Assembly: GCA_048013815.1 (NCBI GenBank)
Contig: CM106586.1
Span: forward strand, 10,416,001-10,480,000
Length of the DNA: 64,000 nt
DNA from: Setoptus koraiensis
Taxonomy: Eukaryota > Animalia > Arthropoda
Reading direction: 5' to 3'
Shown here in pieces: positions 1 through 35,450 of the stretch. The first letter of the stretch is position 1. Every line of letters begins with the position of its first letter. The position numbers and the translations under genes are program-made. The notes under the pieces were generated by a model. It searched no databases. It was not told the DNA's origin and saw only the letters and a list, made by a program, of their open reading frames with translations.

Positions 1-2037
<2,037 letters not shown>

Positions 2038-29444: not shown

Positions 29445-31313
29445 ATCAGTGTGCGGATATCAGTTGTGTGAGCATATCAGTTGCGAGGGGCGCCCATTGC
29501 GACATACTGCTACTGGTTGTAATAGAATCTGTCTGTTTGAATTGCAGATTAGATATATCTCGTTGGGGCTGTCAGCCTTGATCAGCAATCATCAATCAAT
29601 GGCACTATTACTACGAGAGATCATTAGTGCACGGTAGCGCGAATAATAGTATTGAATGGGTTTACTTATTTGGCTATTCTGGCATGCACTTTCAACGATT
29701 TGCGTGGGCAGCTGGGGCCCCATGAGACCAGTTTGCCAAGTCGGCCAGTTTGGTTTTTGAGCAGTTTGAGGGGGAGGGGGGAGCCAAATTGGCCGACTCA
29801 ACAACAACCATCCGACAGCGATTCGCGAATGCCCAAAATGCCAATTTGCTGAGTTAAGTGAGTACAAATATGGCCGCTCAGGGCCGCTGGTCAATCTGTC
29901 GCTGGTCAAATTCATTCAATTATGTATGCAACAGAGAGATAATTTCGCTGATAATTCAATATGCTCTCTCTCTCTGAATCGATCGCACCGCCAGCTCGCT
30001 GATTGTTTTGGTCAGGTGACGTTGTGTTGATTTTGAGGCCGTTTGTCGCCGATATCGTCGGATATCGGCGACACACGGCGAGCAACAAACGAGTCGACTA
30101 GGGTTCCGAGTAACCATTAGTATTAATGTGATTTTGTGGGCCGTTCAACTGGTCTCGGTGTCTCAATCTCGTGGCCAATCGTCTATTGCAATGCACGAAT
30201 TGTTTGTGGGGCAAGAAGTGAGAATTTTTGTCTGAGTGAGTGGATTATCAAGATGGATAAACAATTGGATTAACTGTAGTCTATAGATAGAGTGCTAAGA
30301 AGCGACTAACGCACGCAGACTTTCATGTCTAATTTATTCCTCTTACGCTGGTGGATCTTTCTTTCCAATTTCTTTCTTTCCAATTTCTGTTTTATTTGAT
30401 GGCTAAAAAAGTGAGCTCTCACTTGCTTTTTTTCAAGTGACTTTCACAAAAAACTACTCCATGGCGCGCGTTACCTTACTAGATTGTCGACCGGGATCAG
30501 CTAGCGGCAGCCGGGCCCCCCTAGCGCCGTCGTTTCGTTATTGCGTTCACGCATGAATTTGTGAATGTGTGAATTAATATTTTATGAGCGACCTTATCAA
30601 GCTCTGTTGTCTCGTTGCCACAGACTATGGATTTAAATCTAATTTAACTTAATTCGCCTCTAATCTTCACATGTATGTCTTACACAGTACAATACAGGAG
30701 TAATGTTCATTCATTGGATTCATTAATTGGATGCTGAACGGCTTTCAACGGGACCTCTACAACAAAGTGCTCATTCGTGAATATCCATACAGAAGCGATA
30801 AATTTTTGGCGGACATTTTTGTGGAGAATCATAATAATCACACATTATGCGCTCATTATCACTCACATCGTCACGAGCAACTGCCCATCTATCTATGACG
30901 CAATTGCCATTGTCTATCGACTGGATAACAGCAACAACTGGAAATCTTGAAATCAATTAAAATTAAGAAAATTTTTCACTCACAAGCTACGCACAATTTG
31001 AATGTGAAAACAACCCGAAACAAAAAATATTTACATGATTGCGACACCAACATTCAAAGTAGAACATTCTAGCAAGGGGCACTATCATTGCATCATTGAC
31101 AATCGGTGATAGTTGATGCGATAAATTAAAGTAATACAAAGAAAGAATTAGAACACACAAATCGACAAATTCAGTTTATCCAAAACAATCAACAGCATCA
31201 TAGATAGATCACAGAACAAGTGATTCGTTCGTCATAAGAATAAATCCACTCACTTCCGGTTTGAAAATTCGCTCACTGCCACACACATACACACACACAC
31301 ACAGTCTAGAGTG

Positions 31314-33311
31314 ATGAGTCGTTTCGCCCCAGCAAACGACACTGGATTGCCTGTATTTAGCTACATGGCGGCACCATTTACTAACTCAACTAGCGGCGGC
31401 GGCGAAATTATTCCGGTGCCGCACCATCATGATCAACAAGCAGCCAGCATATTGAATGATAACAGTCTAATAGCTGACGATGGCGAGTCGGCCATCGATT
31501 TGCGATCGCCCATTAATTTAATTATATTAATTATATTGATCAGTATTATATTTGTATCTATAGTGGGCAATTGTTTAGTATGTGTGGCCATATTCACAGA
31601 TAGACGCTTGAGGAAATTAGGCAACGCTTTTATAGTATCATTAGCTATTGCCGATTTATTTGTCAGCTGTTTAGTGATGACATTTGCCTTATGTAACGAA
31701 CTGATGAATTATTGGATGTTTGGCTCGTGGTTTTGTGACGTGTGGATCAGTTTTGATGTAATGTGTTGCACTGCTAGCATATTGAATTTGTGCGCCATCA
31801 GTCTAGATAGATTTATACACATAAAAGATTGTTTATTATATAATCAATATATGACAAAACGAGTGGCCATAAGCGCCGTTATGGCCATTTGGTTCATTTC
31901 CGCTTTGGTGTCGTTCGTGCCAATAGGTATGAGCTGGCACAGGCCGCCTACGTCGCCGTTAATTGCCTCTACGACGGGGGCGCCCGTTGCAACACAGAAT
32001 GGCACGCACTCAATTGAACTGGACACAAATTCAGTCACCATTGAGGACACGGGCAGCGGCCCTGAAAATGGGGCCAAAGTGCGAAAGAAACGCGACAACG
32101 ACAACATATTGGAACAATTGTCGCCCTTCGACCAATTTGATAATAGTTATCTCGGTGATGATGATGCAACAAACAACAATTTTAACACCAACGAGACCCC
32201 GTCGTCATATCCATCTACTGCTGCGGCTGCTGCTACCGCCAGTGGCGGCCCCTACGAGATAAGTAGCGACAACAATAGTGATAGAGTCGCGGGCTTGCGA
32301 GCCGCGGCCCGGCCCCGCCACCCAAGCCAGCAACAACAGCACACAACAAATACCCTGCCCCTGGTGCTAGCCAGAGAGCACAGAACGGCTCGGCTGAGAT
32401 TGAGGCAATTAGAGGCAGGCGACAATTATGAGGGCGACGCCGACGCCGCTGAAGTGGGCGGCCGACGTAAGCCGATTAATAGCATTGTTAATTCCAATAG
32501 AAAACAAGAAAGAATTCAATCTGTGATACAGCAACAACAGCACCAACAACAACAGGCGGGCCCCTCAAACGCACTCAATCACATTGGCGATCATATCAGC
32601 AGCAGTGGCAGCGGCAATTTGGGCCACATTGCGACGCCAACAAACGCGCAGACGCTAGCCAACGACCCTAGGCGCCCCCGACCCGACAACGGCCCCACCG
32701 GCGCGCAGGTGATACCAGCGGCTATCGATAGTAATAACAAGATTAATGAAAACTCATTGGACGAATCTCTCGAATTGATCTCAACATCGCCAGTAGCGGG
32801 CCCAGCGGCACAGCCAGAGCAACGACAGGCAAAGCATTTAGGTCTGGACAGCGACAGCCCGGCACTCGTCACCACAACTGTCGATGCGACATACGCCAGC
32901 GTGGCGCCCTCTCCCGGGGGGCCAGCAGCATCAGGCCAGGTGATATCGGTGGGCCGGCAGCAACAACAGCAGCAGCAACAACAGCAGCAGCAACAGCAGC
33001 AGCAACAACAACGCCAACAACAACGGCAACAACGGCGCCGCTCAACAGCTCGTGATATGGGCGCCCCCGCAAGCACCAAGACCCAGGTCAAGGTGGCGCT
33101 GCCACAATGTGCCTTCGTTTTAACTCCGACATACGCAGTTATCAGCTCCACTATAAGCTTTTATATACCGTGCATCATAATGTTGGGCCTGTATTCGCGA
33201 CTGTTCGCTTGCGCTAGGCGCCACGTCAAGAACATACAAGCCATCACAAAGATACAAACATTCAATAACCAACTGGACAGGTCAGCTGGCGTCGCGTCGC
33301 CCGACCAACAA

Positions 33312-33358
<47 letters not shown>

Positions 33359-35258
33359 ACTACAAAAACAACAACAGCAACAACCGCAACAGCAGCCACA
33401 ACAACAGGTCGCTCTGCAAATAGACCAGCAACAGCTCAAGAGCTCGGCCACCGCGGTCACCTATATGGAGGGCCGCACGGGCAGCGTTTCCGCCCACATT
33501 GTGCACACCACCAAGATACCCGGCGGCGGCGCCGCCGCCGCGCCCGTAACAACGGCACCAACCCCAAAAGCGCCAAGTGCCAACAAGCGCAACAAGCCGG
33601 ACGGAAATAACAACTGTCAGTTGTTGTTGTTGCCGGAAACTAACAGGCAGCAGCGCAACGGGCGCCAACAGCGCCAACGAACGGCCAACACAAACAACAA
33701 CAGCAAGAGCTCTGTCAAGATCAAGTGGCTCAAATCAAAAATGAACGGCCGATTCAACAAATGGAGCAGCCTCAACATTCCAGCCCACGAGGGGCCCCAG
33801 GCCGGCGCGGCGCCATGCTCGAAAAGCAAGAGCGAGCAAGACGAGCAGCGAGATCAGAAGAGGTCTTCGTCAGTGGACGAGCTAACGGGATTGTTGGACG
33901 ACTGTGCGCATCCCAACCAACCTCAAACGCAACCACAATCACAACTACAGCCACAAACACAAATAGAGATAGTAACGCCAACTGACAGAAACAACAACAA
34001 CAACACCGAGATTGAAGAAATAGAGTCAGTGGAGATGGAAATGGCCATAGACGATGCAAGTGACATCGGTGCCAATGACAACCAAATCCAATTGACCACT
34101 ATGACAATGATCAGCAGTGACGCAATTAATTGTATGGCAGCAAACATAAACAGCAACAACAACAACAGTCAGCTGATGTCGGCTGCAAACAATAATCAGC
34201 TGTTCGGAGAGCCAATAGTTAATAAGATGATCAATAGGAATAAACAAGACAGAAATAATCATCGCCAATATCGTAATGTCAAAGACGTCAAACAGCAATG
34301 GATAGAGCAGCAGCAGCAACAACAACAACAAGAGCAACAACTGCACAATAACAACCAACCGACAAGCTCGCTGGCAGACGATCAGCCGTTTCCGGAAGTA
34401 GGGGGCTCGGGTTCGCCGCCTGGTGGCCAGCTGGCCGAGCTTGGCCAGTGTGACAAGGCGGATAGATTTAAAAGTTTGGACCATCCCAAGTTGTTGGCTG
34501 GCATCATTGATAATTTTGTAGATGAGAAAACAACAAACATGATAAAAAGTGATAATCAATTGGTCAGTCCAAATAGCAAATTCCAGCAAACGCAAACGAA
34601 ATGTGTTGGCCAGCAAAAGAGTGAATCGCCAGCAAACGATTTCTATACTACGAGCGCCAATAGCAAACAAAACAACGCCAGAACACTGGCCAATGGGGCC
34701 CAATACAATGCCGATGTGCAAATGTCCAGCCAGAGTAGCAACAAAAACAACACCAACAACGGCCATCATCAGGCCGCCACTCACAAGGCCGCCATAACAT
34801 TGGGCATAATCATGGGCACCTTCCTGTTTTGCTGGGTACCATTTTTCTGTCTCAACATTATCAAGGCCTTTTGTCATGACTGCATACCTAGCTCGGTTTT
34901 TCGCGCCTTCACCTGGCTGGGCTACGCAAACAGTGCGCTCAATCCCATTATTTATGGTATACATAATAGTGAATTTAGGAATGCCTTTAATAGGATATTT
35001 TTCAAGCATCTCAGATGGCATCAGGCGAGCAATTTCAGAGCCTCCAGCTACTACAATGACCTGCAGCATGTTGCCAGAAATCGCCTACATGGACGCCACA
35101 ACAACAACAACAACAACAATAATACTAATACTAATAATGCCGATAGCAATAACAGCAACGCTAATAACGGGGGCTCACAGAGAACACACAGCAATAACCG
35201 ATCGCCCTTGATTAATCAACAACAGCGACGTGAGCAAGACACTTTCAACAGATACTAA
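31314..35258 (+). CDS. Dop1R1: D1-like dopamine receptor (class A GPCR), no coding intron, 1314 aa, with giant low-complexity ECL2 and ICL3
   Basis: TM1 GN; TM2 SLAIADLFVSCLVMTFA; TM3 FCDVWISFDVMCCTASILNLCAISLDRF (amine-binding Asp); TM5 TPTYAVISSTISFYIP (catechol serines); HKAAITLGIIMGTFLFCWVPFF; LGYANSALNPIIY. These segments match arthropod Dop1R1 as I recall it. The first ATG is 31314; the track's 31311 is GTG. Confidence 0.92.
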
Positions 35259-35444: not shown

Positions 35445-35450
35445 AATAAA
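35445..35450 (+). promoter_or_regulatory. Candidate polyadenylation signal (AATAAA) of Dop1R1
   Basis: AATAAA ~190 nt after the stop codon, in AT-rich context. Confidence 0.5.

Follow-up and report, generated by a model that had tools for sequence, protein, structure and literature searches.

An enlarged second extracellular loop with a candidate convertase site in a Dop1R1-type dopamine receptor of the eriophyoid mite Setoptus koraiensis

A 64,000-nucleotide stretch of the genome of the mite Setoptus koraiensis (GenBank assembly GCA_048013815.1, contig CM106586.1, positions 10,416,001 to 10,480,000 of the forward strand; called the window below, with all positions counted from its first letter) carries an intronless gene for a D1-like dopamine receptor whose second extracellular loop (ECL2) is 388 residues long. 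The loop extends from the end of transmembrane helix 4 (TM4; SWHR, residue 210) to Cys599 in LPQC, and the same stretch of the human dopamine receptor D1R comprises about 20 residues. This insert is very probably translated, typical of the clade to which the receptor belongs and weakly constrained. Enlargement of ECL2 in Dop1R1 is a trait of acariform-mite lineages, found in the window's clade, in astigmatid mites and, mildly, in spider mites, and not a peculiarity of one genome. The loop also contains a canonical furin-type motif, and cleavage at this motif can be proposed only tentatively.

Receptor identity and the architecture of the loop

Judged by its sequence, the locus is the eriophyoid-mite orthologue of arthropod Dop1R1, a class A, D1-like receptor, in agreement with a sequence-only reading of this DNA that had already called it a D1-like dopamine receptor. 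An uninterrupted open reading frame (ORF) occupies 31311..35258 (+), and the ATG at 31314, located two codons downstream of an in-frame TAG, opens a product of 1314 amino acids. The Pfam 7tm_1 family (PF00001) matches this product in two stretches with E=6.2e-52. Among solved structures, human D1R is the best match (E=2e-57), followed by the beta-1 adrenergic receptor (1.6e-55) and the octopamine beta-2 receptor (1.1e-48). HMMER aligns the protein with D1R in three blocks, wherein residues 43-222 match D1R 7-185 (TM1-4), residues 590-670 match D1R 184-264 (the ECL2 cysteine and TM5) and residues 1158-1229 match D1R 276-352 (TM6-7). The named relatives of normal length are 'dopamine receptor 1' proteins from ticks, ants, spiders, insects and crustaceans; the nearest of these are from ticks and ants and score about 250 bits, and alpha-1 adrenergic receptors and the D1R-based dLight score about 140 bits. 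A maximum-likelihood (ML) tree built from 370 loop-free columns, for which Oamb and a D2-like receptor served as outgroups, places the window receptor inside arthropod Dop1R1.

The residues that characterize a functional amine receptor are conserved. D148 (Asp3.32) and S611, S612 and S615 (Ser5.42, Ser5.43 and Ser5.46) are invariant across the window receptor, the rest of its clade and some 100 named Dop1R1 proteins. C141 (Cys3.25) and C599 (Cys45.50) occupy invariant alignment columns and would form the conserved disulfide pair. The class A motifs LDRF (residues 164-167), FCWVPFF (1172-1178) and NPIIY (1210-1214) are all present. The occurrence of DRF in place of DRY is common to the window's clade, and in an alignment of 87 Dop1R1 sequences it is also in the majority. 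Local BLASTP alignments show TM blocks that are 82-88% identical to those of relatives. No residue required for a functional catecholamine receptor is missing, and coupling to Gs would be expected from family membership alone. Among the 150 best search representatives there is no further Dop1R1 copy of the window's clade with a short loop.

The gene and its parts are arranged as follows.

31314..35258 (+): Dop1R1-type receptor coding sequence, intronless, 1314 codons plus stop (single ORF; Pfam 7tm_1; human D1R the best structure)
31314..31508 (+): N-terminal tail, extracellular, residues 1-65, with sequons NDT and NST (translation; the AlphaFold2 TM1 helix starts at 66)
31509..31943 (+): TM1-TM4 core, residues 66-210 (aligned to D1R 7-185; AlphaFold2 helices 66-95, 103-131, 137-169 and 182-205)
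31734-31736 (+): Cys3.25 (C141) and, at 31755-31757, the amine-binding Asp3.32 (D148), invariant in alignments; DRF at 31806-31814
31944..33107 (+): ECL2 insert, 388 residues (211-598), cysteine-free and rich in Q, A, S, P, T and N, from the TM4 end to Cys599
32076..32093 (+): KVRKKR, site A, a canonical R-X-K-R convertase motif (P6 K, P4 R, P2 K, P1 R), residues 255-260, loop positions 45-50
32664..32687 (+): DPRRPRPD, site B, a degenerate basic patch with a minimal R-X-X-R only, at the position of a central polybasic run in most presumed eriophyoid orthologues
32958..33011 (+): poly-Q run of 18 residues, a CAG/CAA microsatellite (Tandem Repeats Finder rows 32957-33036)
33108..33110 (+): codon of the ECL2 cysteine Cys45.50 (C599), partner of Cys3.25 (invariant column; aligned to the D1R ECL2 Cys region)
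33111..33233 (+): distal ECL2 and TM5, residues 600-640, with the catechol-binding serines S611, S612 and S615 (D1R 184-264 alignment; AlphaFold2 helix 605-648)
33234..34778 (+): third intracellular loop (ICL3), about 516 residues, Q/N-rich low complexity (open frame; CAA/CAG arrays)
34779..35009 (+): TM6, ECL3, TM7 and helix 8, residues 1156-1232, with CWVPFF and NPIIY (aligned to D1R 276-352)
35010..35255 (+): C-terminal tail, cytoplasmic, N-rich (translation)
35445..35450 (+): AATAAA, a likely polyadenylation signal by inferred function, 187 nt past the stop codon

An imperfect (CA)n microsatellite lies at 31275-31305, directly upstream of the start codon, in what is presumably 5' untranslated region or promoter.

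There are no stop codons in the receptor frame of the 1164-nt loop, whereas the other two forward frames contain 13 and 28. The chance of 388 open codons at the base composition of the loop is 1.4e-6, and none of 20000 shuffles was open. The same pattern is seen in ICL3, where the receptor frame has no stops and the other forward frames have 21 and 29. ECL2 with 388 amino acids and ICL3 with about 516 stand against about 25 and 60-100 amino acids, respectively, in named orthologues. The GC content of the loop is about 56%, versus about 36% in the TM-coding parts, and the CAG/CAA microsatellite covers only about 100 nt of it. The sequons NGT, NET and NNS are present. These measurements bear out most of what the sequence-only reading had described, including the NGT and NET sequons, the poly-Q and the positions of KVRKKR and of the ECL2 cysteine located after it; its count of about 390 stop-free codons (31941-33107) becomes 388.

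No hydrophobic segment or hidden TM helix is present in the loop (the highest 19-residue Kyte-Doolittle mean is 0.61), and therefore the receptor should have the standard topology with the loop outside the cell. AlphaFold2 was given window residues 1-660 with the 87-sequence alignment. The resulting model has helices for TM1-5, and its predicted local distance difference test (pLDDT) score in the loop is 30-40 over residues 217-547, apart from single helices of low-complexity sequence; the model also draws a helix through the poly-Q run (549-577). No folded domain was found in the loop by AlphaFold2. The full-length model of P0022, the closest relative, shows a confident 7TM bundle (pLDDT about 90), and most of its 143-residue ECL2 scores below 50. 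The loop is accordingly predicted by these models to be intrinsically disordered. Frame, hydropathy and structure prediction together favour the earlier description of an open, extracellular and disordered loop with a canonical furin-type motif upstream of Cys45.50.

The architecture suggests a receptor in which two loops, ECL2 and ICL3, have been inflated by disordered and partly repeat-born sequence. The insert is located between the TM4 end and LPQC, in the TM4-proximal half of ECL2. Because it precedes LPQC, the ligand-facing part of ECL2 and the Cys3.25-Cys45.50 pair are untouched. The receptor core might function while the insert projects outward as a glycosylated, floppy appendage, with the pocket-lining residues after Cys45.50 and the disulfide partner in TM3 unchanged.

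Some further observations concern the low-complexity loops. ICL3 has two poly-Q runs. In most members of the clade it also carries islands that resemble T-W-L-K-F-G-R and E-x-x-P-F-L, with KWLKSK and QPFPE as the equivalents in the window; these islands may be cytoplasmic docking motifs. Two ORFs on the opposite strand, at 34026-35069 (-; 347 amino acids, opposite ICL3) and 32591-33151 (-; 186 amino acids, opposite ECL2), encode Cys/Leu/Val-rich low-complexity sequence. They look like by-products of the T-poor, CAA/CAG-rich sense strand and not like genes.

Enlarged loops in other mites

Relatives were found by a word-index search of long proteins and then by an exhaustive HMMER search with residues 1-660. 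The first search yielded 11 strong relatives of 817-1337 amino acids from Logan, JGI and ENA assemblies, and the second ranks long-loop relatives first and normal-length proteins after them. The size of the loop was measured in every protein retrieved as the distance from Asp3.49 (DRY/F) to Pro5.50, with the following results.

About 100 named arthropod Dop1R1 proteins: 77-95
Window receptor: 454
15 other members of the window clade: 117-575
Dust- and scabies-mite-type receptors (n=4; D. farinae, E. maynei, S. scabiei and P0145): 255-285
P0238, which groups with the dust- and scabies-mite-type sequences: 174
Spider mites (Tetranychidae): 112-130
Oribatid mite Oppia nitens: 89
Ticks, Galendromus, spiders and scorpion: 80-93

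The earlier expectation that a normal arthropod loop has a few tens of residues is confirmed by the roughly 100 orthologues with distances of 77-95. However, the architecture is not singular, as had been supposed. All 15 of the closest relatives have an enlarged ECL2, with loop lengths of 120-509 residues in the clade, and so do Dermatophagoides farinae, Euroglyphus maynei and Sarcoptes scabiei, so that a long ECL2 is a common feature of Dop1R1 in mites.

The ML tree unites the window receptor in one strongly supported, long-stemmed clade with P0001-P0011 and P0022-P0025 (Shimodaira-Hasegawa-like approximate likelihood ratio test support 99), and its own terminal branch is long (0.61). A second supported clade is composed of the receptors from Oppia nitens, P0238, S. 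scabiei, E. maynei, P0145 and D. farinae. In the deposited models, the ECL2 regions of D. farinae and S. scabiei are located within single exons of intron-containing genes. The short ECL2 of Oppia nitens (about 25 residues) is likewise contained within one exon. The possibility that the Oppia loop is short because an annotator spliced out a long one was rejected on this ground, and therefore the short loops in relatives are genuine. Since Oppia groups with the long-loop astigmatid receptors, the astigmatid insert either arose after their split or was lost in Oppia. The Oppia gene (GCA_028296485.1, L003 3001-6265) uses 3265 nt for 438 amino acids, with about 1.9 kb modelled as intron, and its listed ORFs are interrupted in TM2/TM3 and again in TM5.

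There are also milder cases. The spider-mite receptors P0191 (Tetranychus urticae) and P0221 (Panonychus citri) and the prostigmatan-like P0027 and P0026 have about 30-70 extra ECL2 residues that are rich in Ser, Pro and Thr and that lack a dibasic site. The distribution suggests that, throughout Acariformes, the half of ECL2 next to TM4 is a hot spot for insertions. A common origin of the eriophyoid and astigmatid inserts was sought by hhalign comparison of loop profiles, which finds nothing (probability 0.03%), and these inserts are either independent or diverged beyond recognition. Literature searches on mite dopamine-receptor ECL2s, on furin-cut or unusually long ECL2s and on split receptors brought up no account of the trait, and the Aculops genome paper mentions neither dopamine nor G protein-coupled receptors (GPCRs).

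The closest relatives come from Logan runs SRR25685063, SRR29510489, SRR29837402 and SRR29131048 and from ENA ERZ761561, on contigs of 4-23 kb, one of which is covered about 600x. This fits with source assemblies that contain eriophyoid mites carried along in host-plant sequencing, as described in PMC11879100. Two of the Logan contigs (L004 and L005) were inspected for transcript status and have no poly(A); they end in low-complexity sequence.

Sequence constraint on the loops of this clade was estimated from the close pair P0007 and P0010, for which the synonymous rate (dS) is near saturation and the ratios of nonsynonymous to synonymous rates (dN/dS) are therefore rough. These ratios are 0.015-0.026 for the TM blocks, 0.19 for ICL3 and 0.44 for ECL2. 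A loop-only alignment of the clade reveals ordered islands in most members, namely [AD]KLNY, PIENQSS, PDFVSS, the central polybasic run and SN.V..NPLD.S. At 388 residues, the loop of the window receptor has 2.7 times the length of the 143-residue loop in P0022, its nearest relative, and thus it is an especially expanded and diverged example. We infer a loop that is tolerated and weakly constrained.

Basic sites and the fate of the loop

Site A is positioned where a convertase could plausibly act. Its surroundings are disordered in the AlphaFold2 model (pLDDT about 32 around residue 255), and it is predicted to be exposed to the lumen between TM4 and TM5. More informative is the occurrence of such sites among relatives. 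In 12 long proteins, there are 20 R-X-[KR]-R clusters in 4127 ECL2 residues vs 5 in 3618 ICL3 residues (binomial P=0.005). The Arg+Lys content of the two loops is comparable (12.5% for ECL2 and 11.8% for ICL3), and the density of clusters is 3.4 times higher in ECL2. When one of each close pair is removed, the counts are 16 vs 4 (P=0.013).

The position of the site also recurs. A dibasic [KR]R is found 36-60 residues past TM4 in 13 of the 19 long-loop sequences, representing both mite clades, and the RKKR of the window is at 47-50. Examples from the window's clade include P0001 (RRRR, 49), P0010 (RNRR, 52), P0009 (RWRR, 37), P0004 (RRPKR, 51-55) and P0007 (RYRKR, 46-50). The astigmatid examples are D. 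farinae, with RRIDKR at 40-45 and RQKR at 59-62, and S. scabiei, with RLKRFKR at 44-50. None of 3000 residue shuffles was as extreme. Circular shifts, in which the clusters are kept, give P=0.0008 for all 19 sequences and P=0.007 for a thinned set of 15. For the thinned eriophyoids alone, the recurrence has P=0.16 (0.07 if the site must include an upstream Arg), and it is significant only with the two clades pooled. The sequences therefore point, with moderate force and in a manner that depends on this pooling, to a class of R-X-[KR]-R sites that is enriched and positionally recurrent in ECL2.

One possibility is that ECL2 acts as a built-in pro-region in acariform mites, wherein a convertase cut about 45-50 residues past TM4 yields a two-chain dopamine receptor. 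We regard this proposal as tentative and rather doubtful. Perhaps the cut occurs at site A in the window receptor, and most clade members would also be cut at the central polybasic run, which would release or trim the middle of the loop. The first chain would carry TM1-4 and the second would carry the rest of ECL2 and TM5-7, and the two would be tied by helix packing and by the Cys3.25-Cys45.50 disulfide. The excised segment, which in relatives includes the KLNY, PIENQSS and PDFVSS islands, might serve as a plug or a tethered modulator, or it might be a secreted peptide. For the cleavage itself, at site A and at the central site in many relatives, the sequences leave a real but minority chance, and it is somewhat more likely that the loop is not cut.

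The strongest alternative is that the loop is translated but never cut, and that it is a tolerated, essentially neutral low-complexity expansion in which RKKR is a chance by-product of sequence rich in Arg, Lys and Gln or has another role, for example as a charge patch or in glycosaminoglycan binding. We give this alternative about even odds. A lone R-X-[KR]-R in a 388-residue loop is not significant (0.14 expected, p=0.135), and the ECL2s of P0002, P0022 and P0023 have none. The positional recurrence fails to reach significance in the thinned eriophyoids. Moreover, the 120-509 range of loop lengths in the clade, with only 143 residues in P0022, indicates fast and weakly constrained turnover. 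Harder to reconcile with a neutral, uncut loop are the 3.4-fold density of R-X-[KR]-R in ECL2 relative to ICL3, which persists on thinning, and the dibasic site that recurs at 36-60 in two clades whose loops are otherwise unalignable.

Several points weigh against the main reading of the locus as an eriophyoid Dop1R1 with a translated, clade-typical loop. The window loop is not recognizably homologous to the loops of its relatives, which also speaks for the uncut alternative: a profile hidden Markov model (HMM) of the 11 other loops gives it -16.7 bits, below the window's own shuffles, and position-specific scoring matrices for the islands return P=0.04 for KLNY, 0.96 for PIENQSS, 0.60 for PDFVS and 0.31 for NPLD. 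With no demonstrable homology in its interior, the case for constraint on the window loop comes down to the open frame and the basic site. In addition, the relatives in the window's clade are presumably eriophyoid, an assignment that follows from their grouping with the window receptor. The tree had only Oamb and a D2-like receptor for outgroups, and no explicit Dop1R2/INDR or DopEcR sequences. Finally, the exact window protein is absent from the recorded proteins.

A by-eye match of DNY, PINS, GDHISSS and NNKINENSLDES in the window loop to the islands of its relatives, in order, was considered and dropped because it has no statistical support.

A different explanation is that all or most of the loop is an in-frame intron or 'exitron' which the mature mRNA lacks, and that the receptor is made with a short ECL2. 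The GC content of the loop, which differs from that of the TM parts, might be taken as a sign of this, and GT...AG pairs are inevitable in 1.2 kb. However, a spliced intron has no reason to maintain 388 open codons (P ~1e-6), and the region is open in all 15 relatives over 120-509 codons. The dN/dS of ECL2 is below 1 in the close pair, and the loops of relatives keep conserved peptide islands. Furthermore, the loop is exonic in the models of D. farinae and S. scabiei, whose genes have real introns elsewhere, and the short ECL2 of Oppia lies in a single exon and so is not a long loop that was modelled away. More than 80% of eriophyoid genes are also intronless. Splicing of this kind is therefore very unlikely.

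Least probable of all, to the point of being barely credible, is a decaying or non-functional copy in which the inflated loops reflect relaxed selection on the whole receptor, since the protein length of three times the normal, the DRF in place of DRY and the long terminal branch are outweighed by intact ligand-binding and activation motifs, by TM blocks that are 82-88% identical to those of relatives and have dN/dS of 0.015-0.026 in P0007/P0010, by the clade-wide occurrence of DRF, and by the failure to find a short-loop copy from the clade among the 150 best representatives.

Known systems, significance and genome context

Arthropod Dop1R1 receptors (DopR1/dDA1; Ixodes, Dermacentor, ant and Tribolium) belong to the same family and share the TM3 Asp, the TM5 Ser triad, Cys3.25 and Cys45.50, CWxP and NPxxY. 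They have about 380-520 amino acids, a distance of 77-95 and a short ICL3, whereas the window receptor, at 1314 amino acids, has a distance of 454 and about 516 amino acids in ICL3. The astigmatid receptors (D. farinae, 823 amino acids; E. maynei, partial, OTF78727.1; S. scabiei, 792 amino acids), public records that bear the name dopamine receptor 1 or dopamine receptor 1-like, are more similar, in that an ECL2 of 189-209 residues is expanded at the same place and that a basic site (RRIDKR/RQKR, RIEKR or RLKRFKR) is located 36-62 residues past TM4, as in the window receptor. They differ from the window receptor in that they form another clade, have loops about half as long with no detectable loop similarity, and are encoded by genes with introns.

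The closest published analogue is human C3aR. This class A GPCR has an 'unusually long ECL2 of about 172 amino acids' that is flexible and glycosylated (PMC10518620). It retains the disulfide between Cys3.25 and the loop, as predicted for the window receptor. However, the C3aR insert follows the ECL2 cysteine (Cys172, near the start of the loop) and the insert of the window receptor precedes it. In C3aR, which is also a peptide receptor and not an amine receptor, sulfated tyrosines and acidic residues of the loop take part in binding the ligand. That loop has less than half the length of the one in the window receptor and is not known to be cut.

[quoted passage not shown] GPR107 is reportedly 'cleaved by furin', to judge from the title of a report by Tafesse et al. 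in 2014 that PMC9711517 cites. The cuts in GPR107, the TSH receptor and adhesion GPCRs fall in the N-terminal ectodomain and leave the bundle as one chain, whereas a cut in ECL2 would split TM1-4 from TM5-7. All natural two-chain 7TM receptors known to us are cut in the N-terminal ectodomain and none inside the bundle, and we know of no natural amine receptor with a bundle split at ECL2. Split-receptor co-expression with rhodopsin, the beta-2 adrenergic receptor and the muscarinic M3 receptor reportedly shows only that such halves can reassemble. By analogy, reassembly of a cut dopamine receptor is plausible.

In amine receptors, ECL2 is the lid of the orthosteric pocket, usually a short one under tight constraint. 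In whole mite lineages, this loop holds 100-500 additional disordered residues, and the genomes concerned are among the most streamlined known from animals. The mite receptors show how much inserted sequence can be tolerated in the TM4-proximal half of ECL2, and they raise the question of whether the insert has a function; access gating, a processed pro-loop and partner docking are possible roles. If the basic site is cut, then the receptor would be a natural split amine GPCR and the first whose 7TM bundle is divided post-translationally. If the loop is mere tolerated filler, then its value is for annotation, because such ORFs should not be 'corrected' by intron modelling. Dop1R1-type receptors have been explored as control targets in arthropod vectors (e.g. 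PMC3265452 and PMC4368516), and hence a mite-specific appendage in dust, scabies and gall/rust mites may have practical interest.

Eriophyoid genomes are described in PMC7738191, as quoted in PMC11879100, as tiny, with two chromosomes and with more than 80% of genes intronless. The intronless receptor gene fits this rule. Elsewhere in the window, an intronless gene for a DDX3/Belle-type DEAD-box helicase of 576 amino acids is located at 307-2037 (+). Its best named match is from Fragariocoptes setiger (Eriophyoidea) at 75% identity, and other named matches are at 66% identity or less. Two 'UNVERIFIED_CONTAM' proteins listed under the sturgeon Acipenser sinensis also rank high for this helicase, one of them at the top, which suggests that the A. 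sinensis assembly carries non-fish and possibly mite-like contamination. Two additional genes were recognized by Pfam scan only: a trypsin-family serine protease ORF of 372 amino acids at 59969-61087 (-) and an ABCC-type transporter encoded by a single ORF of 1438 amino acids at 55042-59358 (+).

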